Assembly (NCBI GenBank): GCA_950097015.1
Contig: CATNEN010000030.1
Coordinates: 372,001 to 436,000, forward strand
Origin: Macrostomum hystrix
Lineage: Eukaryota; Animalia; Platyhelminthes
DNA: 64,000 bases
Direction of reading: 5' to 3'
The position numbers were made by a program, and so were the translations under genes. Under the pieces are notes generated by a model. That model did no database searches. It saw nothing but the letters and a program-made list of their open reading frames with translations, and was not told the DNA's origin. Shown here piece by piece: positions 2,950 through 57,354 of this stretch. How positions within the stretch are numbered: position 1 is the first letter of the stretch; each line of letters starts with the position of its first letter.

Positions 2950-3445
2950 ATGCACATATAACATATACGCTCGTATATCACAAATATTGTTAGTATCTGC
3001 AGCCTTAAATATGCATTAGCAAAAAATGTATTTGTACATTTCAAGCTGCTTCTGCGTGATAGCTACGAGTATATTTTTAGTCCTAATTAAAAGTCAGCTC
3101 TGGAGTGTCGAATGAATTATTAATTTCAAGCTCAACTCTCGTTAATAATATTTGTGTCAAGAAAAAGCAATTAGGTGTTGGAATTGGTCTGTAATTAAAA
3201 TTTGGAATTGAAGCCGCTAGAGCAAAAAACATTTCTTTTTTCCCAATAAATTTTTCCAATATACGTTGTCCGCTGCAACTAATTAATAGTTTCTTATAAT
3301 TCTTCTGAGTTTTTTTAGATCACGATCTTGACTGACAGCATGCTGGTTAGCAACAAATTACGAAGTACTAGTCATTTCGGTTATTTCTTGAACCCGGATG
3401 TGAAACGGATTTGTGATTACAACACAAAGCTGCTACAAATTCGCA

Positions 3446-3556
3446 ATTTGAGGCGCAGCCGCGGAGAGAAGGCTTGGTACAGTAGAGTATAGACTGTTTG
3501 ACAATGAGGAAATCTGGGCTGATGTATACACCTGTGTGTGTCTGTTGTGCTCAAAT
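3446..3556 (+). mobile_element. Degenerate, internally deleted fragment of the tRNA-derived SINE family
   Basis: GGCGCAGCCGCGGAGAGAAGGCTTGG and GATGTATACACCTGTGTG match the SINE body at 56.6-56.8 kb. Confidence 0.65.
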
Positions 3557-4126
3557 TTTCAGTGGAGCTGGCGTAGTTATAGTTAAAAAATGAATAAAAA
3601 TGAACTTTAAAATGTTTTTTTTTGTTTTAAAAAAGACATTATGATTGCTGAATTCAGTAAGTATTTTCTCCACTCCACTTCTTGTATACGCACAGTAAAG
3701 ACACACTATCTAATATTAGGAAGCATGCAAAAAACTTAACTCTTCTGTGATAATGGAAATTGCATAATTTTCTGTTTCAGCCCTTGAGATAGAGTCAGTT
3801 TGCACTCAGCTCTGATTGGCAGGTTCTAAGATCAAAAGAGCATGGCGGGTCACTGCTCAGTTGTAGCAGCTGGTCGTAAACACCTGGGCGTCATCCTATT
3901 AGCCGCGAAAATGACATTCCTTTAATTACGAGTATAAAAAAACTCGCTTCTTGTCGCAAGAAAATGACAAATAACTACACAATGCACTAAGGAGCTTGCT
4001 TGCCTGCACGCATAGGTTAACTGTCGTTTGTTTTTAATTATAGTACGTAATCTTCGAAGTGATGCTAAAATTTGTCTTAAGTTTGGGGCACTCTTTGAGA
4101 TTTGGGGCAGCAACTGGCTAAACTAG

Positions 4127-4943
4127 TGTTGTACTCGCGACTCCCCGGAGGGGTGCACCTAGGAGGGTCAGAGTACGCGGGCCCGTGCTGGCCTGCGTCA
4201 GGGCGCGAGTGTCCGCACGGGACCCTAAGTCTAGGGCGTCAGGACGCACCCAAGTGTCCGGCACACGCGTAGGGACGCTGTGATGTCGATCACCTTCAGC
4301 AGGGCGTCAGGGCGCACGAGCTGGCATCTAAGTACAGCGGGTGTACAGTACAGGGTGACCCCTGGCTGACTACCTGGTCTAGTCCCCCCCTTTAGTCGGC
4401 GTCAGGACACATGGACTGTCCCAGCTACAGCCCCCCGAAATGAAGGAGACAAGGCAGTGACTTACTTCTTGTCTGTACTTGTCTTGTCTATAAGTATCGC
4501 TCGCACTCGCGCGTGCGGTCAATTGCTTGCAGCTGACGTCTGTTCGCGGCTGGCAGACCGCTTGGTCTATATTTATTGTTTGTGCGTGGTGGGGGGACGG
4601 GTTATCGAAACGGTAGTCTGGCGTTGTAGAGCGCGAACACCAGCACGGGGCAGCCACCCGCCCCGGCCGCGCCTTTATAGGCCACGGCTCACCCGGAGCC
4701 GGGCCCCCCCGCCCCACCCACACCCCACCACCCCAGCCCAGCTAACCACCGGCCAATCACGGCGCAGCTGGGGGAGGGGCAGCCTGGGGCGAGGGCCACA
4801 CAGGGCGGCCCAGCCAAACAGCGCGCAGATAACACAATGGCGGCTAAGCGGCTTACACCGCTGAGCCTCTAACGCCAAAAAAACTGCGGTATGCCGCGTA
4901 TGGGGCGAGTGCACTTGAGCAGTGCAAGCGCACGTGCACAACT
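4127..4943 (-). mobile_element. Solo LTR (817 bp) with 5-bp TSD ACTAG
   Basis: Termini TGTTGTAC...GCACAACT (near-inverted); ACTAG at 4122-4126 and 4944-4948; GC-rich; on minus, GC boxes, TATAAA (4679-4674) then AATAAA (4577-4572), i.e. U3-R-U5 order. Confidence 0.7.
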
Positions 4944-4951
4944 ACTAGTGT

Positions 4952-5813
4952 TCATTGTCCCCTTTGCTGCTGCTGCTGCTGCTCCTGATCCTGCACCGGA
5001 AACGATTGTTTTGGTAGCTGGCTCTCAGTCGAAGCCGTAGCTGACCCCGCGCCAAGCTCGAAGTCGAACTCAAGGTCAAGCCCCGCGTTGAACGAACTGG
5101 GTCCGATGCTGCTACCAGCGGCCCTTCCCTGCGACGGCTGAAATCGGACTAGGCGCGTGAAGGCCGCCAGCTGCAGCAACAGTTCGGCCATCTCGCACAG
5201 CGTGAGCAGACTCACTGCCCAGGTAGAGGCCGAGAATTCCGCCAATGTCAGACAGCAGGTCGTAGATCTCGTAGGCCCAGCTTTCCTCGGTGCGCAGGCC
5301 GCGGCCCTGCGCGTCACCAACGCGAATTCGCAGCGAGAGGAGATTCTGCAGCGCGGTGCCGCTGCCAATAGAGCTGTAGGCGGAGTACAGGTTCCAACTG
5401 GTGCGGCGAACAAACTCAGAATTTATGCCCCCACCGCCGTTTAACGAAGAGGACGAGTTTAGATAGAAAGCGCTCGATTGCAGCCAGCGCTGCACCAGCG
5501 GCCGCAGGAAGTCGGCGTTTGCCACTGGCCACGTGTTGGACATGAAGCCGGTTGTGTAGGCCCGACTGATGCAGCGGTCCAGGCAGTTTGACAGGCGGCT
5601 GTCATTACCCGCAAGAATGCGAGCCCTGCGAAGGCAGGTCTCATTGTCCAGCAAGCGATCTAGTACGGTGGGCAGCTGGTGATAGACAGACGAATTTCCC
5701 GTGGCGGAGCTGTTGTCCCAGACGGCTGCGAACGCTGCTATTACCTGTGTATATTGTTGCCATAATCCGATGGAATTAGTACTATCATCACACAAGTCAC
5801 TTACCTGACGCCA
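4952..5813 (-). CDS. DEG/ENaC last exon(s): knuckle/palm, DEG site, TM2 and C-tail; frame changes at 5216
   Basis: ORF 5112-5795 gives ...SDIGGILGLYLG; ORF 4952-5413 frame gives VSLLTLCE...QQRGQ*. Confidence 0.8.
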
Positions 5814-7827
5814 CTAAAAATTCAAAAACTAGTCCTGTAAAAACTTGACACTCTGGGGAACTTTGCACCGATTATAAAAGGGTCTTCTACGAACCTCATT
5901 GATGACACTTCCGGGATCGGAGCTGACAATTCCGTCCATCAGTCGAGACAAATTGGCCCGGCGGGGCTTGTAAAAAAACTCATCGCTGATTGGCAAGCTG
6001 GGATCGACGAAGCCGCAGGTTTCTAGCAGCACCTGCTGGGCCACGCGGATGCGACAGTCCAGCGGTTGGCTGTTGAAGCCTCCCAGTGCCGGCTGGCCAT
6101 CGCGAATGACCATATAGAGCTCAGTGGTACCAGCAATGTCCGTCTCTGTGAGACAAGGCTCCTTGCGACGGTTCTTGGCCAAATATTCCTATTGGGATTG
6201 TTGAATAGAAAACTTTCGTATGAATTTACTACCTAAGTACGCACGCACCTAAGTACGCACGTACCCAAGGACGCACGTACCTTAGTACGCACTACCTAAG
6301 TACGCACTACCTAAGTACACATTACCTAAGTACGCACTACCAAATTACGCACGGTCATACGACGTATGACTATTTTGGACTTCGCACGTATGGTTTGCTT
6401 TAATATAAGGCTCTACATGCACGGGCAGGCATAAACTCAATAGGGACCTGATAACGCACGTCCACCACAGTCTCCTGTCCGCAGGAGGCCTCCACAGCTT
6501 GGCCGTTGCTTGGATAAGTGCCCGGCTGGTGGATGAAAACCATTGCGCCGCCGTTGGTCTGCATGTTGAAGGTGTCGCCTGGAAGTCCGGTTAGTGCGGC
6601 GTTCACCGCTGGCTCGAGCGAGGTGGCATCGACAAAAAGCACCAGCTTCAGCTCGTTGAGCCCGCTGACCTCGGTGCCAGGACGTCGACGCCGAAACTTG
6701 TCCAAGCTGAAGCTCAAGCAGGACGCGTATGCCGGCAGCGCCAGCGGCGTGAAGTCTCGAAAGTCGCAGGCGAGGCTGCCATAGGAGCAGCGGAGGAGCA
6801 TCTGGCTGGCCTGAGCAGCGAACTGGGACACGCGCGCGATGCCATAGGTGTCCCTGATGACCAGGTCTGCGGAATGGCATTTAGTTGCTATTGCTATTCA
6901 CCCAGAATATCAGATATAAAAATAAAAGTCTTTTTTACACCTGACTAAACGGTCGAGATGCGCAGCCGACAGCACAGCCGCAGCTTTTGCGCGGCGCATC
7001 TGAAATCTGTTTACAACTATTAAGTCCATGGACTGGATGGCGCCACACCCACCCTTAATTACCCTCGCTGATGCTGTATGCTGTAAATATGCATAATATT
7101 AATACAAGAAGGCAGGCGTAAATATTTATTAGTCTTATTATTAGCCATATAGGCTTATACGCTCGTAGGTCCTCACGCAACTTGCAAGCTCATGCTAATG
7201 GCGTCTGAGCTGCTGATGTCTTGATATAAGTTCCAACTTATATCAGTTTCAACATAAGTTGCCCACTTCTTTGGAGCATTAAACGGAAAGCGTACAAAAC
7301 TGTAGAAAGCGTGGAAAGCACAGAAATCACTGACTCGGCAGGTTGTAGACAGTGTCGTCCTTCACTCGCAGCAAATCAATGTCCAGCTCGTAGGTGCTAA
7401 ACTTTTCTAGCAGGTACTGGCGAACGGTGCGATTCAGGACGTCCCGCACATGCTGAATATCGTCATAGAGCGGTTGAAACTCAGGGCTGAGGTGGTAGCT
7501 GAACCCACCGCTTGTGGCGTTGCCAACCTGAGGCTCCTGCTTGAAGATGTTACTGATGCCAAACATCATCTCATTGCACACTGTCACGTCTGGATAGACA
7601 AAATCACTGCCTTTGGGATCCACCTTAGTGGTGATTGGCTCATCATAGTATTTGATGACCAGAGTGGACAGGTGAACGGTCAGGCCGCAGAAGGCGCAGG
7701 TGATCAGGCACAGCCAGCTCAGTTGAAGGCCTCTTGTTGGCTGGTTAAGCTTGCGGAAGCCGTGTGCTGTTGTGCTAGATGCAAAAAAGCGTAGTACGTC
7801 TTTGCGACGGGCCGATGGGTTGAGCAT
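4952..7827 (-). CDS. DEG/ENaC (ASIC/FaNaC-like) sodium channel gene, ~4 exons, +1 frameshift at 5216
   Basis: STTAHG pre-TM1 HG motif, TM1, YPDVTVCN, Cys-rich ectodomain, LLSDIGGILGLYLG and VSLLTLCEMAELLLQ (TM2). Exons ~7827-7335, 6866-6448, 6188-~5840, ~5813-4952; first two junctions are phase-compatible GT-AG. Confidence 0.92.
5840..6188 (-). CDS. DEG/ENaC exon 3 (CRIRVAQQVLLETCGFVDPSLP thumb region)
   Basis: cccaatag acceptor at 6189, phase 0; 3' boundary uncertain. Confidence 0.75.
6230..6350. repeat. Short degenerate 15-19-bp tandem repeat (CCTAAGTACGCACTA) in ENaC intron 2
   Basis: Tandem units read directly. Confidence 0.85.
6448..6866 (-). CDS. DEG/ENaC exon 2 (LLRCSYGSLACDF...GAMVFIHQPGTYP)
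   Basis: ccgcag acceptor at 6867; the frame continues exon 1; 3' donor is weak. Confidence 0.8.
6950..7075 (-). mobile_element. SINE 3'/core fragment in ENaC intron 1
   Basis: Reverse strand has GGGTGGGTGTGGCGCCATCCAGTCCATGGAC and CAGATGCGCCGCGCAAAAGCTGCGGCTGTGCTG, shared with copies at 21.8, 24.1 and 54.7 kb. Confidence 0.7.
7335..7827 (-). CDS. DEG/ENaC exon 1 (HG motif, TM1, PxVTVCN)
   Basis: ATG at 7827; donor GTCAGT at 7334, phase 1. Confidence 0.85.
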
Positions 7828-7926
7828 CCCGGAGTGACCATTGCCCCGCAGCTGCTGCTGATTTCCACTGAAGCATCGTGACTCTCCAACGGAATGGCCT
7901 GCGGGAGATCTGACCGAGAACGGTAC

Positions 7927-8005
7927 CAACCGTTGAAAACGGCAACCGTTGAAAACGGCAACCGTTGAAAACGGCAACCGTTGAAAACGGCAACCGTTGA
8001 AAACG
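7927..8005. repeat. 16-bp repeat (CAACCGTTGAAAACGG) x5, 100 bp upstream of the ENaC ATG
   Basis: Perfect tandem copies. Confidence 0.95.
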
Positions 8006-9814
8006 AAAAAGCGCATTCTTCTTACCGTATATTGGACTGAGCCTGTGTCATGTTGATGTCTGTATCAAAATATTTTGAAATGCCGCCTTTTCAGAGGCTA
8101 CGTTCAGAGGCAGATTCCTTACAAATCATTTTTAGTGCAGCAAAGGTGTACTCCTGCATGAAAAATAGCATCAATGGAAAGCTCTATAACCAATGGAAGT
8201 GGAGACTGTGATGTTGGGCCTCTGAGCGAATGACATCCACTGCCCACTTTCCCAATAATTGGGCCATGATTTTCTTATTTGAACTCCTAGGCGATTGTAA
8301 AGTACACATGCTTGTGTCGGTCTTGAACATGCATAAGCTTTCAGAACTCATCGTACAGGGCCCATAATGCCGTATGTAATCAAGATCCTTCCATTGATTG
8401 TTCAAGAAATGAATGGTTGGAGTATGTTTTGACTGTTTTGGCTATGGGCTAACACTACCTGATTCTTTTGTTGTTTGCTGTTTTTATTGCCTGTCCTATT
8501 TAGGTAGTAACGATAACACAGATTATTTAGTGTATTTATGTTCGTGCATTCATTATAGCCCATTTACCTCTTATGTGAGTCTGAGTGGGTCTGAAAATTT
8601 CTGTTTGATTTGACAACCATTCTTTAACAGCAGAAGGACCACGCATTTTTTTTCTGCTGGGGTATTCCAAATACCCACTGCCTACTTCACTCCCAAACCA
8701 AATGACCGAATGGTGCTTTTTGCCACCAGACACCCCGAGTTGTTTGCTAAGATTGAGCAAAAATAAAATTTTAGCCCGTGTTGGGGAATTTGGCTACGAT
8801 TGGTTATTGAAATTCGATTGCTTATTTTCGGGGGCATCCCATCTGATTGATAGACATATAGGTTTAGACCATTTGATTCCGACCATAGACAAAAAAAAAT
8901 TTCTCACGAAGATACAGTCACGAAGCAGCCAGTCAGTCAGTGGTGGCAAAACGTAAAAGCCGAATTCAAAGTTCACTTCAATGTTCCATATAATGCTCCT
9001 TATTTCGATGAGATTATGATATAATATCCTGGTTTTTGTCAAATAATCTCACCAAAAATTACCATAGACAACACATTCCCGGCTCAGAATAGTACAATTT
9101 TTTAACGATTAAATAAGAAATCGTATTTTATCGCAAATCATCTCTAAAGGGTGCAAAATATAGACTTTAAGTAGATAACTCATATAATCTACTTGTTGTC
9201 TATGGTTAAAGTGGCTTAAATCATCTATTCCCTTTTCTGATAAACATTTGGCAAGATTTAGATTGTAATTGCTCGAGAAAATCCATAGATTTTTTAGGTC
9301 TATTAACTAAGCAATAGTGGATAAAAGTGCATCATATTGATTAGAATGATGGTAACGATTGAGAAGAAAACAATGAAACAATTGTCTGATTGAGTACAAA
9401 TATTAAGCATACTATGAAGGCACCATTCATAACTGCATAATTTGTATGTGTAATTTTGGCTCAAACCCCGCGTACAGTTTGAGTTTGATCTGCTCGCATA
9501 GAAAAGTTGCTTAGCTGACTGACGCTTCTGTATGCAAATGGTCCCACAAGCAGTCGTTTTGCCAAATCGATTATCAGCTGCTTATTGAGTCTCATTCCCA
9601 TATCCCACTGGCTAAGCCAGTTTAACAATGGCAAGGGTAAATGACTCAGTGTTGGTAGCTTATTTAAATCACCAATATGAAACTCTTTAAAGAAGAAGTA
9701 AAGAAGACAAGTGCCGCCTCTGAACAGCCGAATTTTTCGAATTAACATTTTTCGTTTGTATTACAGCAGGAGTAAGTTATATTTTACCTGATTATAAACA
9801 CTGAGCTATACACT

Positions 9815-11107
9815 TGCTGACACCAGAGAACACTAGCCACAACGAGAGCTGACACCTGAGAACACTATCCACAATGAGAGCTGACACCTGAGAACACTAG
9901 CCACAACGGGATCTGACACCTGAGAACACTAGCCAGAAAGAGAGCTGACATCTGAGAACACTAGCCAGAAAGAGAGCTGACATCTGAGAACACTAGCCAG
10001 AAAGAGAGCTGACATCTGAGAACACTAGCCACAATGAGAGCTGACATCTGAGAACACTAGCCAGAAAGAGAGCTGACATCTGAGAACACTAGCCACAACG
10101 AGAGCTGACACCTGAGAACACTATCCACAATGAGAGCTGACACCAGAGAACACTAGCCACAACGAGATCTGACACCTGAGAACACTAGCCAGAATGAGAG
10201 CTGACACCAGAGAACACTAGCCACAATGAGAGCTGACACCAGAGAACACTATCCACAATGAGAGCTGACACCAGAGAACACTAGCCACAACGAGATCTGA
10301 CACCTGAGAACACTAGCCAGAATGAGAGCTGACACCAGAGAACACTATCCACAATGAGAGCTGACACCAGAGAACACTAGCCACAACGAGATCTGACACC
10401 TGAGAACACTAGCCAGAAAGAGAGCTGACACCAGAGAACACTATCCACAATGAGAGCTGACACCTGAGAACACTAGCCACAACGAGAGCTGACAGCTGAG
10501 AACACTAGCCACAATGAGAGCTGACACCAGAGAACACTATCCACAACGAGAGCTGACACCAGAGAACACTAGCCACAATGAGAGCTGACACCAGAGAACA
10601 CTAGCCACAATGAGAGCTGACACCAGAGAACACTAGCCACAATGAGAGCTGACACCAGAGAACACTAGCCACAATGAGAGCTGACACCAGAGAACACTAG
10701 CCACAATGAGAGCTGACACCAGAGAACACTAGCCACAGTGAGAGCTGACACCAGAGAACACAATCCACAATGAGAGCTGACACCAGAGAACACTAGCCAC
10801 AATGAGAGCTGACACCAGAGAACACAATCCACAATGAGAGCTGACAACAGAGAACACAATCCACAATGAGAGCTGACACCAGAGAACACAATCCACAATG
10901 AGAGCTGATACCTGAGAACACTAGCCACAACGAGAGCTGACACCAGAGAACACAATCCACAGTGAGAGCTGACACCAGAGAACACAATCCACAGTGAGAG
11001 CTGACACCAGAGAACACAATCCACAATGAGAGCTGAAACCAGAGAAAACTAGCCACAATGAGAGCTGACACCAGAGAACACTAGCCACAATGAGAGCTGA
11101 CACGTGA
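9815..11107. repeat. 32-bp minisatellite (CTGACACCAGAGAACACTAGCCACAATGAGAG)n, ~40 copies
   Basis: Tandem array ending ~25 bp before the ABHD14-like ORF. Confidence 0.97.
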
Positions 11108-11131
11108 GAAATTCCATGACAACAATCACAG

Positions 11132-18122: not shown

Positions 18123-18409
18123 CTTTGCTTGTCTGCTGTCTCATCCTAATCATGTTTGAGTACTATCTATTGATCCTACGTTTGATCATAATCATTAAAA
18201 AAACTGACGATGCGAGATGCCAATAATTTATATTGATTGCTAATCAAGACAATGGCTATTAGTAAAAGCAATTTCACTTGCAATAGTCAAGACAATGACA
18301 TACTAGTTATGCTCAGATTAATTAATGCAAAGGTAATTACTTCGAGGATTGAATTAAATACGATTCAAAATAGAATGGTAAATACAGAGTAAACAAGACG
18401 AAGGAGTGA

Positions 18410-19005
18410 TGAGAGATGAAAGATGGAATGAGATGGAAGGTTGGGGTGAGATGAGAGGAGAGATGGGGTAGAGAATGAGATGGAAGGTTAGGGGAGATGA
18501 GATGAGAGGAGAGATGGGGTAGAGAATGAGATGGAAGGTTAGGGAGATGAGATGAGAGGAGAGATGGGGTAGAGAATGAGATGGAAGGTTAGGGAGATGA
18601 GATGAGAGGAGAGATGGGGTAGAGAATGAGATGGAAGGTTAGGGAGATGAGATGGGAGGAGAGATCGGGGAGAGAATGAGATGGAAGGTTGGGGAGATGA
18701 GATGGGAGGAGAGATGGGTAGAGAATGAGATGAGAGGAGAGATGGGTAGAGAATGAGATGAGAGGAGAGATGGGGTAGAGAATGAGATCAGAGGAGAGAT
18801 GGGGTAGAGAATGAGATGAGAGGAGAGATGGGTAGAGAATGAGATGGAAGGTTAGGGAGATGAGATGGGAGGAGAGATCGGGGAGAGAATGAGATGAGAG
18901 GAGAGATGGGTAGAGAATGAGATGAGAGGAGAGATGGGTAGAGAATGAGATGAGAGGAGAGATGGGGTAGAGAATGAGATGCGAGGAGAGATGGGGTAGA
19001 GGATA
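18410..19005. repeat. Purine-rich composite minisatellite (GAGATGAGAGGAGAGATGGGGTAGAGAAT with GGAAGGTTAGG variant)
   Basis: Tandem units read directly. Confidence 0.93.
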
Positions 19006-19654: not shown

Positions 19655-19838
19655 AGAGATAGTAAATAGATAGATAGGTAGATAGATAGATAGGTACGTA
19701 CTCGTAGATAGGTAGATAGATAGATAGATAGATAGGTAGGTAGATAGATAGGTAGGTAGATAGATAGATAGATAGATAGATAGGTACTCGTAGATAGGTA
19801 GATAGATAGGTAGATAGATAGATAGATAGATAGATAGA
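19655..19838. repeat. (AGAT/AGGT)n microsatellite
   Basis: Direct reading. Confidence 0.97.
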
Positions 19839-19900
19839 CGAATGTAAAGAAACCACGCACACAGAGTAGGAATCTCTCTTAATTGCAAGTTGAATCTGTC

Positions 19901-19939
19901 GACCAATATTTCGGCCCTTTCTGGGCCTTCGTCAGGGTC
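19901..19939 (-). ncRNA. Minimal type I hammerhead ribozyme
   Basis: Minus strand GACC-CUGACGA-A-GGCCC-AGAAA-GGGCC-GAAA-U-AUU-GGUC: stem I GACC/GGUC, core, 5-bp stem II, palindromic stem III, AUU triplet. Confidence 0.78.
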
Positions 19940-24295: not shown

Positions 24296-26289
24296 TCACT
24301 CGCGTGTGCACTTTGCGCAGGCGCCGCGCAAGTGCAGCAGGCCAGTGAAGGCCTTGCGAAAGTCCACATTAAATATGGTGTAAATTATTGGATTGATGGC
24401 CGAGTTCACATAGCCCAGCCACACGCACAGGCTGTAGACGTCATTGCGCACTTGAAAGTTCAACGCCTCGCCCAGGTACACGACGAAGAAGGGCAGCCAG
24501 CAGAGCATAAAGATGCCCATGATGATGCCTAGCGTGCGCAGTGCTCTGCGCTCCCTGCTTAGCGAGATCTTCTGCCTCTGGCGCGAATGCTCCAGCATCC
24601 TGTGTCGCTCTCTCGAGTCAATACCATCGGCTTTATCAGCTGGCGCCACTGCCGACGCCGTCAAGATGTTGCCAGCGTCCTTCGCTGTTGCCGAGGCAGC
24701 CGGAGCAGTCGCCGATCCGACGGCGGACGATCGGCCGCCGTCTGCATTGGCGTTGACGGTGGCCGCCACCACGACTGCAGCCGAGGCAGCCGCCGCGGAA
24801 GCGACCTGGGCGACTTCCACATCATCGGCTTCATCGTCCTTGCCATCGCTGCTGTCATCCTGGGGTGGGCGGTCGGGGTCGGTTTCGGTCTCATTCTGTG
24901 CCTCTCTGTCTCTGCCTCTTCCTTTCACTCCGTGTGTTTCAAACCCCGCTTTTCTCTGATTGGCTAGTCAAGGTCGCGGGGTCATACGCTCGTAGCTCAT
25001 TGGCCAAAATTCTGATTGGACAAAACCGTGAAGCTCAAATTTTCGGAGTTTGATGTAAACATTGTTTCAATGGTTTTTTCTATGTAAGTAAAATCAATTG
25101 CTATAATAATAATTTAGTTTTTAGATGCGCATTTCGAAGAAAGCCATCGTATTTCCCTTGTTTCCCTAGAACGTACGAGATAGAGAGAGAATAAGGACAC
25201 ACAAGTAACCGAATAAGAAAATTCTTATCAAACAGCTCATGAGTGCCTGAAGGATTTGGCGATGCAAATATTTAGTATTCTCATCGTTCTCATCGTTCGA
25301 CTACAGAATGATGATCCAACTAGTCGCCCCAAAACTACAAGAGCAGTCATTCGGTTGGCTCCTGTACTTCACACTCCATATAAGCGTGAAGTGTGCTTGT
25401 GTCAGGGCGAGAATACAAGTGAGATTGCTAAAGCGAATGGGAGAAGGCAAAGCGCAGTAATGAGCGGAGGTGGAGTCCACGAGCCGGCTGCTGCTGCTGC
25501 TGCTGCTGCTGCGGCGGCGGCAGCGGTGGCGGCGGTGGCGGCAGCGGCTTTCGAGATGCCGAGTGAAGAGGCATGCTGCAGAATTTCGCCATTAATACGA
25601 GAAGAAGGATGAGACAAGAGGCTGGGCGGAAAGAAAGAGAGGAGAAAATAGGAGAAGAAGGGAGGGAGGATGACGACAGAAAGAGTGGGAGAAGAGGGAC
25701 CGAACGAGGCGTGTGTCCTCATCCAATTAACTGGCTTCCACCCCTGAGCTCAGCACACCAAATATATGCGAGAAAGTCTTGCTGACGACCATAGCAGAGC
25801 CGCGAGAGGAGAGGGAATCGCGATGGGAAGGAAGCTGAAGTCTTCCTGTTGTCACCCTCTCACACCCTTCTTCTGTCTGGCGGAGAGAGCATGGCGGCTT
25901 GGTCATTCGACCCCTCAACCCCAAGCCACGTCGCTGTTTGATGTCTTGCCCGGCGTTGGCGGCGACGGTGGCGGTGGCGGCGACGGCTGTGGCGGCGGTC
26001 GCAGTTTGAGATTTCCGCAAGCCAACGATGAAGTGAAGAAGGAGGCTCAGACAGACTAATGCAATGCCCTCTCCGCTGCAGGCCAAGTTGCTTGGTTTAA
26101 ACAAGTATTCCTCACGCATACGCTCACTTACTCGGCCTTCACTATGGGATCTCAGGGCTAGTTGGGACCGCGAACTCTCAGCCCCGCGACTCTTGTTCCC
26201 CCCTGGCTGGAGTGCCAATGGGGCGATGCAAACTGGCCGCTAATCCCATTCAGCCCCCGCCCATTCGCTGCTTTTCTTCTCTCGCATTC

Positions 26290-32300: not shown

Positions 32301-33095
32301 TCATGTGGCCCAACTGGTAAAGTTTCTCCTCTCTCTATATTACTACTCAAAACCGGCCGAGATGCTCACCGGGTTGACCTCATGCCGCTCCGATGGCAGC
32401 CGGGTGAGTCTCGCGGCCGCTGAGGCGGCGGCTCGCTTCTGCAGCCTCTTGCGGAGCGCAAAGAAGATGCTGATGTACAACGAGACAATGATCACAGCCG
32501 GTATGTAGAAGCTGCCTAGAGCGCTGAACACAATGTAGCCTTTGTCGTCGGGCAGTTTGCACCGATCGACGGTGCGGTTGCTCCCGGCGGCTGCGCCTCT
32601 GGCGGCGCCCCAGCTGAGGACGGGCCCAACGCTGATGGCGCCGCTGAGGCCGAAGACGGCGGCGATCATGATCAGCACGGTGGTGGTCGTTCTCTTGCTG
32701 GCGTACATAATCGGATACTTGATGGCGCAGTAGCGATCGACCGCGATGGCGGCCAGGTTCAGGATGCTGGCCGTGCAGAAGAAAATGTCCGACGTCGTGA
32801 ACACTGTGCACACAATGTCTGGCAGGAGCCACAGGTCGTTGGTTAAATAGACTTTCACCTGTAGCGGCAGTACCAGAATTCCTACCGCCATGTCTGCACA
32901 GGCCAAGCTGACAATGAGAAAGTTCTGCGCCTGTCTCAGGCCGCGATAGGTGAAAACGGCTAGGATTACCAGCACATTGCCTACTACAGTGAGCAAAATC
33001 ACGAGGCACATTAGCGGCACAGCTAGCCATTTTTCAATTGGAACTGAGCTCATTTTAGTCAGCGGTGACGTCTGCGACTGCTCAGTGCTGGACAT
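24296..33095 (-). CDS. Tyramine/octopamine-type biogenic amine GPCR; exon 1 33095-32370 (TM1-5), exon 2 24955-24296 (ICL3, TM6-7)
   Basis: GNVLVI, LACAD, TM3 SDIFFCTASILNL with amine-binding Asp, DRY, GYIVFSALGSFYIP, KISLSRERRALRTLGIIMG, CWLPFF, NPIIY; donor CCG/GTGAGC at 32369 and acceptor at 24956 are both phase 0. Confidence 0.93.
28140..28455. repeat. 27-bp G-rich minisatellite (GAGTGAGGTGGGTGTCGGGTAGAGAGG)
   Basis: Tandem units in the amine receptor intron. Confidence 0.9.
28960..30815. repeat. 21-bp minisatellite (CAGGGTATGTAAAGATGAGGA)n
   Basis: ~88 copies; source of the 363-831 aa artefact ORFs. Confidence 0.98.
30820..31140. repeat. Related 22-bp degenerate repeat (GGTGAGAACAGGGAATGGGACA)
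   Basis: Continues from the 21-mer array and shares GAACAGGG. Confidence 0.88.
31934..32345 (+). mobile_element. tRNA-derived SINE, type-B tail, head truncated; antisense in the receptor intron ~25 bp from the donor
   Basis: ~99% identical by eye to 56620-56990 over the body. Confidence 0.85.
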
Positions 33096-38552: not shown

Positions 38553-38949
38553 TCATTTATGGGCAATATTTTTATATTCTATGGTATATACGTGTACGAG
38601 TAAAATTTGTAACATTTAAAAAAATATATTTTCTATATTCGTTTCTTCAGAGAATGAAGTTCTACTGTAAGTAGCTAGATAAGCATGCTAATACTCGTAG
38701 TAGCTGAAATTCGATTTTTGATAACACATGGGTTTGATGATGTGTTAAAAACGTTGCATAAAACGCAAAAACGCTTAAAAAAGATTACGAATACTTTTTT
38801 TCGCCGAAAAGCCAGTTAGGTTTCATCTATTCAGTTTCAGAAATGTAAAAGGCAAGTTAAACAATTTAGTCGAAAAAACACATAGAACAGTTGGAAAAGT
38901 AGGGATTATTTAATGGATATCACAAGCAGATGTAGGACATTTAGGTGGA

Positions 38950-43075: not shown

Positions 43076-43734
43076 ACGATTTAATCTCTCACATTATCAT
43101 CTACTTTCTCTCCCGTTCCCGTTCTCACTAGTCTGCCGCTGTCTCACTTCTGTATGCCCACTTGAATAGTGGCCGGCATATGAACAGTCTGTCGTTTCTA
43201 CTCTCATAAAAATCTTAGTAGCTACGCTCGTAAGAAAAATTATTTGCTTAGCACACGAGTCGTCTTTCGCAAGTCAACGTCCACCCAGTCGTTCTGTGAT
43301 CTCGTGGCGTTTAATCTCTTTTAATCTGGTCTCTAGAAGCAGAATGCTGCGAAAAGATAGTCAGACGGTGTTGTATTTCTAGTAGCAGTAGATGCTGATT
43401 TCAAGCAATTCACAGTTCAATCTCAAAGAGAATTTGGGTCAATCGGAAAATGTTGGCGACGTATCTGTTTGTCATAGAAAATGTTTGTAGTAGCCTTTGC
43501 AGTCATTGCAGGCGGCTTGAATGCAAGCTACTATTACTAAAGTGATTTAGCATCGATGCAGAATTGGTCGTACAAACTGGAACTCCAAAAGAAACTTTAA
43601 CATTTTCTTCGCCAAATCCGTTTGCCGGCACTAATCCTGGCTTGCAAAAGGAGACAGCTTTGCTTTTAATCCCGGTCAGGCGGAATTTCGCGACATTTCC
43701 CAAGGGAATATTACTATTTATTGCTCGAGTTTAT

Positions 43735-43923: not shown

Positions 43924-43970
<47 letters not shown>

Positions 43971-46443: not shown

Positions 46444-47556
46444 GGGTTGTAGCCAGTGGGGTTGTAGCCTAGTGGGGGTTGTAGCCTAGTGTGGGTTGTA
46501 GCCTAGTGGGGGTTGTAGCCTAGTGGGGGTTGTAGCCTAGTGGGGGTTGTAGCCTAGTGGGGGTTGTAGCCTAGTGGGGTTGTAGCCTAGTGGGGTTGTA
46601 GCCTAGTGGGGGTTGTAGCCTAGTTGGGGTTGTAGCCTAGTGGGGGTTGTAGCCTAGTGGGGGTTGTAGCCTAGTGGGGTTGTAGCCTAGTGGGGGTTGT
46701 AGCCTAGTGGGGGTTGTAGCCTAGTGGGGGTTGTAGCCTAGTGGGGGTTGTAGTCTAGTGGGGGTTCTAGCCTTGTGGGGGTTGTAGTCTATTGTCTAGT
46801 GGGGGGTTCTGGCCTTGTGGAGGTTGTAGTCTAGTGGGGGTTCTAGCCTAGTGGGGGTTGTAGTCTAGTGGGTGGTTGTAGCCTAGTGTGGGTTGTAGCC
46901 TTGTGGGGGGTTGTAGCCTAGTGGGGGTTGTAGCCTAGTGGGGGTTGTAGCATAGTGGGGGTTGTAGCCTTGTGGGGGTTGTAGCATAGTGGGGGTTCTA
47001 GCCTTGTGGGGGTTGTAGCCTTGTGGGGGTTGTAGCCTAGTGGGGGGTTTTAGCCTTGTGGGGGTTGTAGTCTATTGTCTAGTGGGGTGTTCTGGCCTAG
47101 TGGGGGTTGTAGTCTATTGTCTAGTGGGGTGTTCTGGCCTAGTGGGGGTTGTAGTCTATTGTCTAGTGGGGTGTTCTGGCCTAGTGGGGGTTGTAGCCTT
47201 GTGGGGGTTGTAGCCTAGTGGAGGGTTCTAGCCTTGTGGGGGTTGTAGCATAGTGGGGGTTCTAGCCTTGTGGGGGTTGTAGCCTTGTGGGGGTTGTAGC
47301 CTAGTGGGGGGTTCTAGCCTTGTGGGGGTTGTAGTCTATTGTCTAGTGGGGTGTTCTGGCCTAGTGGGGGTTGTAGTCTATTGTCTAGTGGGGTGTTCTG
47401 GCCTAGTGGGGGTTGTAGCCTTGTGGGGGTTGTAGCCTAGTGGAGGGTTCTAGCCTTGTGGGGGTTGTAGCATAGTGGGGGTTGTAGCCTTGTGGGGGTT
47501 GTAGCCTTGTGGGGGTTGTAGCCTAGTGGGGGTTGTAGCCTAGTGGGGGTTGTAGC
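46444..47556. repeat. 17-bp G-rich minisatellite (TAGTGGGGGTTGTAGCC)n
   Basis: ~60 units, each with a G4-G6 run. Confidence 0.97.
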
Positions 47557-49494: not shown

Positions 49495-50698
49495 GACATT
49501 GTCCAGGAGCGGCACCGCTGCTATCAAAGGCGGGCTGGTTGCCCTGGAGATGAGCCTTGCTGGTCTCATAGCGCTGTTCGGTATCAGCGGCAATATCCTC
49601 ACCATTCGGGTGCTGCGGGTGCCGAACCTTCGAAAGACCAGCACGGCCTTCTACTTCACAGTCCTGGCCGCTGTGGACATCCTGGTACTGCTGATCGGCC
49701 CTTCAACTAAGGCCTTGGCTGCCGCCATTTACGCCAACGAGCGCCAATTTCGAGACACGCATGTGATCATGTGCAAGTTCCACATGTTTTTTAACTATTC
49801 TGTGACACAAATCAGCGCCTGGATACTAGTTGCCGTGACCATCGATCGCATGGTGTGGGTGGTCTGCCCATTCAAGGCGCGACAGTTCTGCACAATCAGA
49901 CGGGCCACTGTGGTCACTGCTCTGATCATTTTTCTGGTTAGCCTGATCAACTGCCGCCATCCATGGTACATAACCCTGATGGAAAAATACAACCAGACTC
50001 ATTGCACAACAAATGACGATTTTATTAAGAACACGTACGTGAAGTACGTCGATCCAGCTCTGGTGACCATCGGCCCATTTCTGGTAATGTTCATTGCCAA
50101 CCTGCTCATCATTCGGAAGCTGCACCAGGTCAAGGCTAAACGCGAGAAGAATCTCCACAAGGCGCCGGACAAGAGGCGGAAGGACGGCAGCAACCTCACC
50201 AAGATGCTACTGTGCACCAGCATATTCTACCTGATGTCCTCGCTGCCCTACCTCATCTTGACGCTGGTATTGAAAGAGAAAAGAAGCGCCATACTGAAGC
50301 AAGACCCGCTGCTTCTAAATCTAGTTTACCTGATCCAGGCGCTAAGCTACAGCATGTTTAATCTAAACTATGCCATCCACTTCCTGCTGTATTGCCTTGC
50401 CGGACCAGCCTTCAAGGCGGAGGCGTTCCGCCTTCTCAGAATCCGCCCAAGAAGAGGCAACGAGCGCAAAGGTCGCGGAGGCGGCGACGGCGGTGGTGGC
50501 AAAGGCGGCGGCGACGCCAACGGTGGAGCCTCCGGCACCACGGCAGCCGGTGAAAAGCTTGCAGACGGCGGCGACAAAATCATGGAGGAGTCTGTTGAGC
50601 GGCCCGACATTCACGCCATTCCGGAAGGCAACGCGGAAGAGGCCGTTGAGCTGCTTGAGGAGCCGCCGAGGTTGACCCAGGCCAGCGCTCTTGTATAG
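49495..50698 (+). CDS. Class A orphan GPCR, FMRFamide/peptide-receptor-like; all 7 TM in one exon
   Basis: GNILTIRV, TSTAFYFTVLAAVD, CKFH, SAWILVAVTIDRMVWVVCPF, PFLVMFIAN, LTKML, NYAIHFLLYC; no in-frame ATG upstream of TM1, tgtag acceptor at 49494. Confidence 0.92.
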
Positions 50699-52134
50699 AG
50701 CTCCTGTACCCAGACATAGCGGGTAGCAGACTACTAGAGTGAAGTCGCATAGTGAAGTCGTGTTTCCTTGGATATCGTTTCATCGCTCATTTGTGAAGCT
50801 TATATTTTCTTTTTAATGCGCACTGATATCATTATCGATTTCTATGCAACTAATCTTACTACCACCTACCTGAGTGCACGAATGCACTAGACTGGCCTCA
50901 CTCCACACACACACGCACACGCACACACACACATGTCAGCGATTGAGCATTCTTCACAAAGAGATCGAATGCTAAAACGGATTATTCATTCGAGATTAAT
51001 ACGAGTAAATACCCAGCTTGTTTTTTCTGGACTCTGATTATCAACGCACATACTCAACAACTCAACTATCCGCAGCTTTATTTGACAAAAATATTTTTTT
51101 AAAACGTAGCTTACCGTGATTTTATTTCGCTTCTCAGTAAACGTCTGCTAAATTTCGAAGTCGTATCGTAACAAGCTCCGACAACTTTTAGCTGACATGC
51201 AAAGCGCCGGCTATTCAAACTCTATTATTCCATTCTTCAGAACTAACGATGCTGCACCTAAATGTTGTGATTATTCTCTCATGTAAGCGGTTAGCATATT
51301 TGAATATTACGAGGTTCAGGTTGTTGGTCTTCTGGATGTTTGCTGGTGTTAAAGTCTTGATAGCTTTGGACTTCTGATTGAAAGGGAAAGGTTGGGAGTT
51401 CTGCCTAATCATTTTTGCAAAGAAATTTGTGTCCTTGACTTAATTATCCAGTGCTTCATTTCACCCTGTCGTAAATTTTACTTGGACATTTTGATTTGGT
51501 TGGTGTAGCGGTGTGGTGTGGTTGCCCCACAGTCTGGACTGAACGCGATAGCAGTTGCGCCACTGGCTGTAAAAATATTCCTCTATTTCAATCTGTTGAA
51601 GTTTTACTATTGTTTCTAGGTTAGCCCTGTTCAGGCTGTTTAATGTTCAAGCTTCTGAGGTCATTCAATTTTATTTGATCGAAATTTGTCTAATTCGTGG
51701 AAAATTGGAAAATTTATGCCCGAGTCGCAATATAAGCATCCTTATATCGATTTTCTAACTCACTTATACTTAAGTAAGTATTTCTACATGAGTCTTATTT
51801 GTATTTCTCTGAGTGTTTATCGGTTAACTATTTCTATGTACTGAGCTGCGAGTTCTGTAGCCCAGAAATATATTCTTAGAGTCAGATCTCATCACAAGTC
51901 CAGCAAAATTGGCGCGTTCGATATTTTTTTCCAATCAGATGGTCAGTCATAGTCTGCGAACTCGATACACGGCTGTTCCGCTTTGGTTTTTCTTGTTTTG
52001 TGTGACATATTTAGTTGCAGGGAATAGTTTAGTTGTACTCGTAGTTCATGGCTTGTTGTTCAAAATAAACAAGAGTAGTAGTTCATCAAAAAATACTTTC
52101 AATGATGACAACTTGGCAGGTTTATCTGGTAGAT

Positions 52135-52330: not shown

Positions 52331-54704
52331 GTTGTAGTTCAGCATAGGGTTATTTAGCATATGCATGGTAGTTTGGTAGATGAAATTTTGGAAACGGTAG
52401 ATAGTTTGTTAGAGTATTTTAACAGATGAAAAACATTATAAATTTCGGCAAATCATTTAGTCCTTGCTTTAAAACTTGTTGAGCTAATGCTCTACGAGTT
52501 ACGACCTATTTCACACTAGATCTTGCTTCCTAGGGTCAGCTAAACGACCCATGTGATTTAACATGGCTTGTGCACTATAATATATTTTAAATCTCAATAA
52601 TGCTAGCTCTATTTGAAATGAACATCTTTGCCCAAATGAACAGGTAAGGATTGCTCTCAGTTAGTAATAAGGGAGGAAGGAAAAGGGAAAGTTAAAAAAA
52701 GAATAGTGATTGCGGAGCTAAATGGTTAAATAGAGGGTAGGAGAGAAGCGTTTCTCGATTGCAGGATGAAGCTCTTTGTCTATTTTGCATGTCGAAAAAG
52801 AGGCCAACGTTGCGCTGTGCGGTTAGACGTTTTTCCAGTGCAAAGTTGCTAATCAGTGGCGTATTAGTTGCTAACTGATGCTATTCCGTTCAAGCAAAGT
52901 GAACATAATCGGCAGATGAACATTTAGAAAGGGCTCAAAATATGGCTAGCTCTTGGCAACTCTGAGACGTCGTGGTCGATTTCTTTGAAAATGAAGACAT
53001 CTGACGGGCTGACTGGCTCGAGCCCGGAGCTACATGTCGATCATCTTGTCACTCAGGCGTGACAGAACAGGCGTAGAAAAGCGCTGAAATCCGACTGAAG
53101 TGTCAACAGAAATGTTTCCACAGTAACAGCTGCCCTACGCTCTAAGAATTACAAGGTTGGAATTTTATGACGCAGATTAAAACAGTTCATGATGTGGCTT
53201 TTTTAGCGTCTACAGTTTCTGATTCAACTGGTCCTTAGTCGCTGTATTATGTACAGAGATTCTGCACCATGTGAGTGACATGTGAGATTCTATATACTTT
53301 CAGCCTCTGGTATCTATCCCAGTGTGAAGACGCGCTATAGATTTCGGATTAGCTCAGCTATTATCCTATGCTAGTGCCAGAATACTCACCTGTGACAATC
53401 GGGCACTGCAAGGTGAACAGATGACCTTTGACAAATAAACTTATTGTTGTTGATGTATTCATTATCAGGTAGATGAGAATAAATGCCGCTATTTTAGAAG
53501 AAGGCTACCTTAGCTTTTGAACTTCAGACAAGGGGATGGCAGGCTAGATTCGAAGTTAGTGCAGCGAGAGAGAGAAAGAGAAAACATAGATGAGTTGGGT
53601 AAAAAAGCGTCAGCATGAAGCGACGACTAGCAATGTTTGCAGAGTTTCCCTATTAATTAACGCTAGAAGAGAGTTTCTCCTTCCTCTCTTTCAACTCTGC
53701 CTTTTTCTGGCGAAGGCAGAGCTGTGCAGACCGTTTCCAGCCTAAGGAGCGGCAGAATGAAGGATAGAGAAGCACCGAGAGCAGCAGCTGGGAGGGACCC
53801 ATCGCGCGCGTCCGGTTTCTCCCAGGATCGATGTCCCGTGTTTTTGGAGGCCAGCAGAGGAGCCAGAAGCGGAGAATGACATTGGGGAGCGGTGCCGGGG
53901 TGTGGCTTGGATGTGGTTCTGCCCGGCGCTGTTGCTCCTATCGGCTAGCCACGATGCGGGCTTCAATTATCAATTCTCTCTCTATTTCCCGCTTCTCCAC
54001 TGCGCTGCTTGCGTGTTGTTGCGCCAGACTGCGTCTGCTGGCGGTGCGTGCTAAGGCAAAACTAAGATAAGGGATGAAGAGACGCAGGAATAAAGCAGTG
54101 TCGGCTGGTTTGTCTCATAGGCCCCGTTTGCGTCCGACGAGGACGCTGCGAATGTGAATTAGGACTGCCTCGATCGATAGCTGTCGTTTCTTTCAGCTTT
54201 CCTCTGTGATCCCTTTGTGCTAAAATCGGCGCCTCCCTCTTCCCGCTACCAGCTGCGGATCATCGAGCGCTGCATGTGAAAACTGATGCTGTTCTTTAGA
54301 CTGAGCAAAGCGGCTTCATCTGGATTTTGTACCGATCTTCGGCTCATTTATTTTCTCTGACGCGCCCATTTCGCGTCGGTTTTGCGTTATTCCTCCGGTG
54401 TAGTAGGAAAGGGTCTATTGGCTAGAAAAAACTGGCTTTAAGGTTTGTTGTGCATCCACTTACTTATAAAATACGAGTATGTTAATGTACGAGTAGGTAG
54501 AAGGTATGAGCAAGCTTTTGGGAAAATATTTCAGCATAATGAACAATCTGATCGAATATACACACAGGATGTCGTTCTCATTTGGTCCTTTATAAAGTGA
54601 ATAGTGGATTCTGGATTATGGAGACTGCGTAAATGTTTGTCCTTCATGCCTTCTATTAAAAAGAACAATAATACTCGTTGTTGATTACACCTACCTCATT
54701 TGTG

Positions 54705-54935: not shown

Positions 54936-54974
54936 TCGGAAATATGAAGCTGCATGCTAAGTTTTCGCAATATT

Positions 54975-55090
54975 TAGCTCCCAATCCCTCCCTCCGCGGC
55001 TGTGCCCCAAATGAATGTGGCTTCGCCGCGGAATCGAGCTTAGGGACCTTCGTGCGAGAGGCAGACGCGTTAACCGCTCTGCCACTCATC
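54975..55090 (-). mobile_element. 5' part of tRNA-derived SINE (first head type) with intact A and B boxes
   Basis: Minus strand TGGCAGAGCGGTTAACGCGTCTGCCTCTCGCACGAAGGTCCCTAAGCTCGATTCC. Confidence 0.8.
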
Positions 55091-56538
55091 CCTGTCAGAT
55101 CTAATATCATAGGATTAAAAAGATTTGAATGTTGAAAGGCTTCCCATAGGAACAGAGTCAATAATTTATTGAAACGGCATGGCATACGGCATGCAAATCT
55201 AAGCAACTTTTGACATAACTTTCACCTTATCCGATGGCGGTTCTCAAATAATGTTCTCCGGTTCTGTGGTCTCCGGGCCGTTCGGTTATAAAACTGTCAG
55301 CCCTAAGGAAGATGGAAGCACCAGTCTAGGTCAAGGCGGCACACAGAAATCACTATCAAGTGAAAACCGGCCTAAAATTTATGCATGTGCTGGCTCAGTT
55401 TCAGGAGACAGTCGGAAAGAGATGATTCCGCTACTGAGACGGACTTAATTGCACCTACGACTTTGAGTTGAATGATCTCTCACTGTCGGTCTTCGCCCGG
55501 ATGCCATAATTTTCCTTCGAGCGCGCGACAAAAAAAGAACCACCGCCGAGCACAGATGAGCATGAGGCCCTAGCGCGATCTGCAATCCGCTTAATGGACT
55601 CCCGACAGCAGCTGTTGCAATGAACCCTCCATCTCACCCTGCCTGAGACTGGCTCCTCGCGTGCAATATAGCCGGATGGGGATAAGCGCAGTAGATTGTC
55701 AGTCATCCTAGCCCGGCGGGTGGATTCTCCTGAGCGTCTAGTCCGCAAACAGTGACAGCTGCGAAACTATCCACCACCCACCGCCCGTTTCATTCCTCCT
55801 CACACTGCGGGGTGGCTCCGCTTGTGGATAAGCGGTCTAAAGCGGATGCAGCAGCTCTGCTATTGCCATAGACGGAATGGAAGGAGAAAGTGGTGTGAGA
55901 TAGACATTGGTGCCATTCTGGCATTTTTTAAGCCCTACTTTCGCCTCCTTTTTAGCCTAGTTGAATTCCTGCTCATAAATTTTGAATGTACGAGGTCGCA
56001 GTACTGGACAGAACATAGGTGGACAATCACAAATGCGGGAAAAACTGTTTTAACAATTACTGGGAGTGAGGCGCGTGCAACTCTAACATTGTTTCTTAAT
56101 TGGCAATCGGACGCTCGCAGGTTCAGTGCATTCACAAGATCTCTACAAGAATCTGAGGCAAAGGAGACAATAAAGAGTCCAGTAAGATTGCTGCGCAGTT
56201 TGGAGAGGAGGCCAATTAGTGAAGGAGTTCCAGGTTGTGTTGGAACTCAACTGGGTCATGCTCAGTGGCCGCATGTTTTTTTAAATGCTATGCTTGGTTA
56301 CACAAATATGCAAACTGACACTCAAACCAAGCAGAAACCAAAACAAAGCTTTACCTTTAATAGTGCAAGACACTCAGCTCAAGAGCAGCCCTGAACTCAG
56401 TCTCAGCTGAGCTAAACCCGACATACTCATTCTCACTCCTTCGATCTGCCTTTCTGAAAAATTTCCCATCAGAAAAATTCGAAACGACCAGTGACCTATG
56501 ATATCTTTAGTTGTGGAAAACCAGTATGCTACTAAGTT

Positions 56539-56990
56539 GGGTCGGTGGCAGAGCGGTTAACGCGTTTGCCTCTCGCACCAAGGTCCCTAAGCTCGATTCC
56601 ACGGCGAGGCCACATTTATTTGGGGCGCAGCCGCGGAGAGAAGGCTTGGGGGCTTGTCGTGCAATTTACACCCTTGAGGGCCAACCTCCAAGGTACAATG
56701 AAACGTACACTGCCTGACGATGAGAAAGTCAGGGCAGATGTACACACCTGTGTGAGCGTATGCCTGCGTACAGTATCTGTGTGCGTGTGTGCTCAGGAGT
56801 CAGCGAAACGGGCAGTATTGACTCCAGCTGTAAATGGATGCCAGCATCTGCTGGGGGGTAGAAACTTTGGTGGGTGTGGCGACCTCCCCAGTCCACGGAC
56901 TGTACGCAGCCTCTAAAGGCGCGGCTGCGCCAGAGTTCATGTGGCCCAACTGGTAAAGTTTCTCCTCTCTCTATATTACTACTCAAAACC
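56539..56990 (+). mobile_element. Full-head tRNA-derived SINE, type-B tail
   Basis: A box TGGCAGAGCGG (~56546), B box GCTCGATTCC (~56591), body matching 31934-32345. Confidence 0.88.
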
Positions 56991-57005
56991 GGCCGAGATG
57001 CTCAC

Positions 57006-57354
57006 CGGGTTGACCTCATGCCGCTCCGATGGCAGCCGGGTGAGCCTCGCGGCCGCTGAGGCGGCGGCTCGCTTCTGCAGCCTCTTGCGGAGCGCAAAGA
57101 AGATGCTGATGTACAACGAGACAATGATCACAGCCGGTATGTACTCGTAGAAGCTGCCCAGAGCGCTGAACACAATGTAGCCTTTGTCGTCGGGCAGTTT
57201 GCACCGATCGACGGTGCGGTTGCTCCCGGCGGCTGCGCCTCTGGCGGCGCCCCAGCTGAGGACGGGCCCAACGCTGATGGCGCCGCTGAGGCCGAAGACG
57301 GCGGCGATCATGATCAGCACGGTGGTGGTCGTTCTCTTGCTGGCGTACATAATC
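57006..57354 (-). pseudogene. Partial duplicate of amine receptor exon 1 (TM4-TM5-start of ICL3)
   Basis: Matches 32370-32712 with 2 substitutions and a 6-bp insertion seen; lacks TM1-3 and exon 2. Confidence 0.9.

Follow-up and report, generated by a model that had tools for sequence, protein, structure and literature searches.

The closest described systems to the sequence words reported here are the excision footprints of Tc1/mariner transposons. Mos1 leaves a footprint of 3 nucleotides (nt), and the ends of Minos begin CGAG, as do those of the elements discussed below. After end joining, Tc1/mariner footprints consist of transposon overhang sequence placed between two target duplications (PMC3878927). 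The inverted terminal repeats (ITRs) of Hsmar2, of the irritans subfamily, carry CGAGGG (PMC3770610), and in rice a two-genome survey recognised only 94 excisions, mostly with deletions or filler DNA (PMC4423477). The DNA considered here is a 64,000-base pair (bp) stretch of the flatworm Macrostomum hystrix (C30:372001-436000; the window), taken from an assembly of 220 Mb in 42 contigs, in which contigs are given as Cn and sampled loci as Lnnn. The window is rich in the 8-mer TA-CGAG-TA, in its opposite orientation TA-CTCG-TA and in a related 10-mer. These words are read, with a probability of roughly 0.88, as excision scars of mariner-family (DD34D) cut-and-paste transposons that have TA|CGAGG...CCTCG|TA ends. 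Similarly to the footprints of Sleeping Beauty (C(A/T)GTA), Mos1 and Hsmar1, the flatworm words have a TA target, keep the duplicated TA and retain a few terminal nt, and they share the two-orientation outcome of a mismatched duplex as well as variants that retain both ends (PMC3878927). The flatworm scars differ in keeping four nt, where the studied mariners and Sleeping Beauty typically keep 2-3, and in having been detected, across a natural genome, as an excess of words rather than as the products of an assay.

The preliminary description of this DNA had placed 11 8-mers (TACGAGTA or TACTCGTA) and four 10-mers (TACGCTCGTA) in the window, and all 15 are present where it had placed them. The excess over background that it had claimed is also borne out. 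Dinucleotide-preserving shuffles of the window yield a mean of 1.11 and a maximum of 4 for the 8-mer (11 observed) and a mean of 0.06 and a maximum of 1 for the 10-mer (4 observed), and Markov models of orders 1-5 predict far fewer sites than are found (0.2-1.4 per strand word for the 8-mer and 0.01-0.11 for the 10-mer). Once tandem arrays are excluded, the 8-mer tops the over-representation of all TA-NNNN-TA words of the window that are not composed of A and T only. The window counts are to be read with the caveat that the sites at 19699 and 19785 share one GATA/GGTA microsatellite and that those at 54472 and 54488 are only 16 bp apart. In general character the window is eukaryotic and minisatellite-rich, with about 45% G+C and CpG at 0.62 of expectation.

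Genome-wide, the 8-mer occurs at 16,450 sites, compared with 8,051 for the reversed control word, which has no CpG, and with an expectation of about 3,800 when the shuffle mean of the window is scaled up. Both versions are equally frequent (8,103 forward and 8,347 reverse). The 10-mer occurs at 3,768 sites, compared with 274 for its control. In an unbiased 215-kb sample composed of the window and the sampled loci, 26 8-mers and nine 10-mers are present (2.6 and 0.12 expected), and versions of the scar decayed at CpG show no excess. A minority of the 8-mers is background rather than scars; the 8-mer of L017, for example, is a point variant of TGCGAGTA, the word found in its sister copies. The scar classes total roughly 16,000, or about 20,000 when a 9-mer class described below is included, which corresponds to about 1 per 11 kb. 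An earlier estimate of one scar per 4 kb thus holds in the window (1 per 4.3 kb, about 2.5 times the genome mean) but not for the genome as a whole.

Mariners with ends of the required sequence are found in the same genome, in which a first look with Pfam Transposase_1 gives 344 mariner candidates. Of the size classes that were sampled, six are represented by complete elements with a TA duplication and TA|CGAGG...CCTCG|TA ends (L067, L069, L071, L073, L094 and L101), six have one TA|CGAGG-type end only (L068, L070, L095, L096, L097 and L099), two have other ends and two are mutated. At least 11 sampled mariner lineages have TA|CGAGG...CCTCG|TA ends. The inverted arms span about 40 nt in L067, L073, L094 and L101 and about 120-210 nt in L069, L071, L068 and L097, and are thus longer in several lineages than the classic mariner ends (about 30 nt). 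The four copies checked (L069, L071, L067 and L073) have intact transposase open reading frames (ORFs) of 345-405 amino acids that match Pfam Transposase_1 (PF01359, E = 1e-13 to 1e-20) and have the DD34D spacing of 34 and the SPDLA motif. Three of the four also match HTH_48, the helix-turn-helix domain of Mos1, with L069 alone above the Pfam cut-off, and a match to the Mos1 structure 3hos is noted (E = 6e-56). The CGAGG-ended families look active.

The terminal 12-mer of these families, TA|CGAGGG(G/T)TGT, is found as 322 exact ends genome-wide, compared with 9 for the control. Opposed pairs of such ends lie 1,758 bp apart in full-length elements and 82-1,380 bp apart in internally deleted derivatives. 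For every surviving end there are about 50-60 scars. The mariners are present at about one copy per Mb, so that a 60-kb window is unlikely to hold a source element. Two TACGAGG sites in the window (51308 and 55989) were considered as decayed mariner ends and are ruled out, as neither has similarity to mariner terminal inverted repeats (TIRs) or a Pfam match. The absence of a CGAG-terminated transposon had been set beforehand as grounds for refutation; the genome was checked, and mariners of this type were found. The same description had attributed the words to a TA-targeting DNA transposon with CGAG...CTCG ends and had stated that some mariner TIRs begin CGAG. The latter agrees with Hsmar2 (PMC3770610), and the former stands, with the refinement that the source is specifically a DD34D mariner and not a Minos-type Tc1 element.

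Hsmar2 is also the described mariner that one of the flatworm elements resembles in layout. L067, with 351 amino acids, a GDETW motif, the residues D160/D254/D289 and CGAGGG ends, corresponds to the layout reported for HSMAR2 (PMC3770610), a likeness by motifs, and the flatworm DD34D mariners are in part Hsmar2-like by this comparison. Hsmar2 is a dead human fossil, the reconstructed form of which left non-canonical footprints in assays (PMC3770610), whereas the flatworm ORFs are intact and the scars are mostly canonical. A separate observation concerns the L069-type end repeat, which holds an internal CTCGTA 34 nt from its end (L069:318-357; C1:13645025-13645064). The resulting 40-bp unit, TA|CGAGGGGTGTCC...TTTTG-CTCG-TA, looks like a tiny element inside the L069-type end.

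Judged by sequence, the letters inserted at the scars equal the four found at either end of mariner families that have intact transposase genes in this genome. By the established Tc1/mariner mechanism, such a mariner would insert at TA and duplicate it. At excision, one cut would fall on the transferred strand where element and flank meet and the second on the opposite strand, about 4 nt into the element, such that each flank would retain TA and a 3' overhang of CGAG. The two overhangs could pair at their outer bases (C:G and G:C), leaving two central mismatches, and repair or replication of this mismatched duplex would generate either TA-CGAG-TA or TA-CTCG-TA (+6 bp). Trimming of one overhang to 2 nt would give TA-CGAGCG-TA (+8), while retention of both overhangs would give TA-CGAGCTCG-TA (+10). 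The data are compatible with the initial reading of the 10-mer, in which one end contributes 2 nt and the other 4. Scars can accumulate at low copy number since the element moves on or is lost. As an observation in its own right, the palindrome TACTAGTA (TA-CTAG-TA) has 8 sites in the 215-kb sample (1.8 expected) and TACGCGTA has none (0.9 expected); independent repair of both central mismatches in the scar duplex would be expected to give two products, of which CTAG is one.

The series extends to products that retain more of the element. A palindromic 12-mer, TACGAGCTCGTA, is expected if each flank keeps TA and CGAG and the two are joined without loss; this prediction preceded the count, which gave 263 genome sites compared with 4 for the control. 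Longer joints of the form TACGAG-N(1-30)-CTCGTA number 746 genome-wide (327 for the control), a count in which adjacent double scars are included, and both 13-mers and 14-mers are present. The listed sample contains six 13-mers, four of which are TACGAG-C-CTCGTA, which reads as CGAG joined to CCTCG. The more demanding form TACGAGG-N(0-30)-CCTCGTA has 19 sites (8 for the control). Among individual remnants, the site at C30:3682710 is TA-CGAGGGGTGTCC-CTCG-TA and includes 12 letters of the L069/L068 end repeat, that at C28:1030647 begins with CGAGGGTTG, which is the L073 end, that at C33:3928553 is a 38-bp remnant with the ends CGAGGGGC...GCCCCTCG, and that at C10:1679727 is TA-CGAGG-CCTCG-TA, the 5+5 product. 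By their match to these end repeats, the letters kept beyond the first four are identified as mariner letters, in rare, over-retained remnants.

The alternative that survives best, albeit with a low probability, is that the source is an extinct or unsampled element of the Minos type (Tc1 family, DD34E) with CGAG ends, the mariners sharing no more than the four letters. Minos, from Drosophila hydei, leaves a 6-bp footprint in the passages of PMC3386967 that cite Arca et al. 1997, and the flatworm words have the same +6 bp scar and follow the same heteroduplex logic. Tc1-like elements (Pfam DDE_3) are also numerous, with 763 first-look candidates genome-wide, many with intact ORFs; inspection covered only about 40 of these loci, from about 20 families. 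These families end in TAGC, TAGT, TACC, CACC, CACT or TTCC, and none of the approximately 20 ends in CGAG, in contrast to the hundreds of mariner ends with the right letters; Tc1-like (DDE_3) elements are thus rejected as the scar source in favor of DD34D mariners. The over-retained remnants (CGAGGGGTGTCC and CGAGGGTTG) likewise spell mariner end repeats, and where TA|CGAGCA does occur in Tc1-like elements, it is always 25-28 nt inside a TAGC-type end repeat.

The last of these points is exemplified by L030 (C10:103202-106618), a Tc1-like locus with a TACGAG...CTCGTA pair in perfect 30-nt inverted repeats. This pair was considered as terminal and is ruled out by outer arms: the word is internal because identity runs 27 nt further outward to a TAGC end, and all 15 genome copies of the L030-type motif carry the outer arm. 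Three armless TA|CGAGCA sites (C1:7666508, C6:69244 = C24:7005564, and C31:2442778) were likewise rejected as element ends and are regarded as chance matches because no inverted mate lies within 3 kb. A lost CGAGCA end of the TAGC-type Tc1 clade, once deduced from imprecise scars, is incorrect as the source, as the mariner ends have G at position 5. Apart from the question of the scars, the local TA|TAGC-ended Tc1-like families have in common an inner motif, T(G/A)CG(A/G/C)GCA(T/A)TCAATTTAATCC, at about 27 nt from the end (loci among L001-L045, L030 included, and L051-L058). This motif reads TA|CGAGCA in one Tc1-like family, where it occurs with three different outer arms, and is probably a transposase binding site.

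That the words are insertions at TA, as was originally proposed, is evident from filled and empty paralogues. The scar at 57142..57149 (minus strand) lies in a partial duplicate of a G-protein-coupled receptor (GPCR) gene and reads ...GGTATG-TA-CTCG-TA-GAAGCT..., while its paralogue reads ...GGTATG-TA-GAAGCT... with an unscarred TA at 32506..32507, within the GPCR ORF 32343-33095 (minus strand; Pfam 7tm_1, E = 2e-41). The difference is exactly +6 bp between flanks that are 96-98% identical, and the scar is in frame, adding Glu-Tyr (GSFY-EY-IPAVIIV). An exact +8 bp is provided by two Tc1-like copies that are 92% identical, L029 (GAA-TA-CGAGCG-TA-TCC, at L029:1999) and L022 (GAA-TA-TCC). In addition, two minus-strand scars interrupt a (GATA/GGTA)n microsatellite, the array pattern of which returns once the extra letters are removed. 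The first is a compound scar, TA-CG-TA-CTCG-TA, at 19695..19706 (8-mer at 19699), removal of which gives AGG-TA-GATAGG; the second is the 8-mer TA-CTCG-TA at 19785..19792, which without CTCGTA gives ...ATAGG-TA-GATAGG.... In the empty sites reconstructed from the scars, A or T occupies positions +-2 and +-3 of the TA in 79-85% of cases (54% background), which is the usual target bias of Tc1/mariner elements. Two scars lie on the terminal TATA of Tc1-like copies, one at the right end of L023 on C10 (L023:2097, GC-TA-CGAGCG-TA-TA) and one at the right end of L040 (C2:3988693-3991373, G-TA-CGAG-TA-TA). Such ends may be preferred mariner targets, as two of about 160 such TAs are scarred when about 0.2 would be expected.

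A second and still less probable alternative is that the words are pieces of a dispersed repeat, or variants of a tandem array, that were spread by copying from few events. Some sites would suit local copying of this kind: one microsatellite contains two of the window sites, another two are separated by 16 bp, C1 has four 10-mers within 340 bp in what is probably an amplified unit, and the word TATAGCTA is such a case, with ten of its 12 window sites in one minisatellite. However, no similarity exists among the sequences that flank the window sites and 20 sampled sites of the genome, searches of site flanks by BLAST against the sampled sequence return true paralogues only, and the sites are distributed across all contigs on both strands. 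Least probable of all is a short functional motif under selection, such as a transcription-factor or other protein site, which would suit the partial dyad symmetry (TAC..GTA, TACG..CGTA) and the 10-mer at 24985, in a GC-rich stretch with CCAAT boxes beside a GPCR gene segment, but not the paralogues with 6 or 8 bp added at a plain TA (coding sequence and microsatellite included), the unrelated and merely AT-biased flanks, or a series of 8-, 10- and 12-mers that obeys end-joining logic in letters that match transposon ends.

A further class of scar-like words has a single additional letter. Among the first 100 TACGAG-N-TA sites listed, N is C in 65, A in 14, T in 12 and G in 9, which implies about 4,000 excess sites genome-wide for the 9-mer TACGAGCTA (TA-CGAG-C-TA). 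The 9-mer flanks (e.g., C1:285919, C1:357397 and C1:377117) are unique, AT-biased and scar-like, and the base that follows is G in 9 of 20 sampled (L074-L093). The mariner ends leave the 9-mer unexplained because its C mismatches CGAGG, and a CGAGC-ended mariner lineage was not found among the 16 sampled. One possibility is that the 9-mer arises when, before ligation, one CGAG overhang gains a single nt by copying of the G at the end of its partner, in which case TACGAGCTTA and TACGAGCTCTA would form a declining series between the 9-mer and the 12-mer. Another possibility is an unsampled lineage.

Several points weigh against a mariner origin of the scars. Mos1 and Hsmar1 are listed with 3-nt footprints (table in PMC3878927), and the corresponding 3-nt word TACGATA has no excess in the 215-kb sample (12 sites, 11.7 expected); thus, a 4-nt cut must be assumed. 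No locus was seen with the element in one copy and the scar in the other, and the link between mariner and scar consequently rests on 4-12 letters of sequence identity. Copies on C10 and C41 that are 99.3-99.6% identical share all of their scars over the approximately 7 kb compared, with none polymorphic. The fifth letter of the 9-mer is C, compared to G in every sampled mariner end. Coverage is also partial, with about 16 of the 344 mariner candidates inspected (16 size classes) and about 40 of the 763 Tc1-like candidates (about 20 families, from thirty loci and ten size classes). With regard to the copies compared, contig stretches that are 99.3-100% identical, transposon insertions included, are noted between C10:113942-122000 and C41:542500-550830 and between C6:181177-182745 and C24:7088992-7090560. 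These pairs are possibly uncollapsed haplotypes or recent segmental duplications. No second copy of the window was found in the assembly.

The scars represent a known kind of event, the Tc1/mariner excision footprint, from new members of the DD34D mariners, and it is their scale and cleanliness that are unusual. New in the present case are the mariner source, the proof of the +8 bp insertion, the series of scars that was predicted and the remnants that bridge scars and elements. A full-text literature search found no paper that uses scar words in this sense and none that links Macrostomum mariners with footprints. Compared to Minos (DD34E), the flatworm source is DD34D (Pfam Transposase_1), and no sampled Tc1-like family of this genome has CGAG ends. 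Like the rice survey (PMC4423477), the present analysis treats DNA-transposon excision as a genome-wide source of small insertions and deletions, but the flatworm gives roughly 16,000-20,000 clean scars from a single genome. Heavy past cut-and-paste activity as a source of +6/+8-bp insertions, which the preliminary description had proposed, is consistent with this total and with the +6 and +8 bp paralogue pairs.

A low-copy cut-and-paste family can thus mark a genome far beyond its copy number, and a count of living copies only greatly understates past DNA-transposon activity, since scars outnumber ends by about 50-60 to 1. Each of the thousands of scars also represents a double-strand break that was repaired from a known starting structure, and together they may be of use in describing the end-joining habits of a regenerating flatworm, in dating transposon activity and in explaining small in-frame insertions in genes. 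In biochemical terms, the flatworm mariners are predicted to make a 4-nt staggered cut. A broader proposal, which is tentative and on balance doubtful, is that the flatworm mariners, like Minos, place the cut on the non-transferred strand 4 nt into the element, and not 3 nt as in Mos1, that their scars are a leading source of short insertions, in-frame +6 bp insertions in coding sequence included, and that the TA-CGAG-C-TA class records a regular one-nt addition in germ-line end joining, which would provide a large-sample readout of double-strand-break repair.

The remaining scars of the window are distributed as follows, on the plus strand unless noted. The 8-mer TA-CGAG-TA occurs at 3064..3071, with an AT-rich inferred empty site (GATAGC-TA-TATTTT), and at 3927..3934. 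Two 8-mers of opposite orientation lie 97 bp apart at 38595..38602 and 38692..38699 (minus strand), and no inverted repeat other than the word itself is present between them. An 8-mer at 51000..51007 is about 300 bp downstream of a rhodopsin-type GPCR ORF (49499-50698), another is at 52036..52043 (minus strand), and a pair separated by 16 bp is at 54472..54479 and 54488..54495. The four 10-mers, TA-CGCTCG-TA of the +8 bp class, are at 2966..2975 (in an ATATAT context), 7158..7167, 24985..24994 and 43223..43232. That at 7158 is positioned between two ORF segments of the amiloride-sensitive sodium channel family (5112-5792 and 7327-8013, both minus strand). The 10-mer at 24985 is surrounded by GC-rich sequence with ATTGG (CCAAT) boxes, and a GPCR ORF segment (24296-24928, minus strand) lies about 60 bp away. 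Of genes, the window carries three ORFs for GPCRs of the rhodopsin type, together with an amiloride-sensitive sodium channel gene that is present in segments. At 24940-25040, three ATTGG (CCAAT-box) motifs surround the 10-mer scar in GC-rich sequence that adjoins the GPCR ORF segment; this interval is a putative promoter, and a scar there may affect regulation.

Minisatellites occupy roughly a third of the window, in dozens of arrays, in which units of 11-44 bp are repeated up to about 110 times and strand skews are strong (465-1012, 9816-11110, 11983-15846, 16993-17788, 28955-31140, 33363-35855, 36486-38551, 39847-41396, 46443-47556 and 58137-59618). The array at 36486-38551 has a 20-bp unit, and ten of its units read GTCGT-TATAGCTA-AGTGG instead of GTCGT-TAGCTA-AGTGG, i.e., with an extra TA. 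The local excess of TATAGCTA is therefore attributed to a 2-bp TA gain that was spread by array copying, and this word, for which the ten window sites represent one minisatellite variant, is rejected within the window as a scar of TAGC-ended elements. A repeat of about 365 bp at 56539-57430 was also considered as the source of the scars and is rejected, as it is a tRNA-derived short interspersed nuclear element (SINE) with an (ATT)n tail and not an element with TIRs. A first look finds 6,568 candidates for this SINE across the genome, at about 95% identity. Its copy in the window (56539-56825 and 57354-57430) is split by 528 bp of GPCR-derived sequence, with an inverted fragment at 54977-55086, and the SINE/GPCR composite recurs at 31934-32712 with 98% identity.

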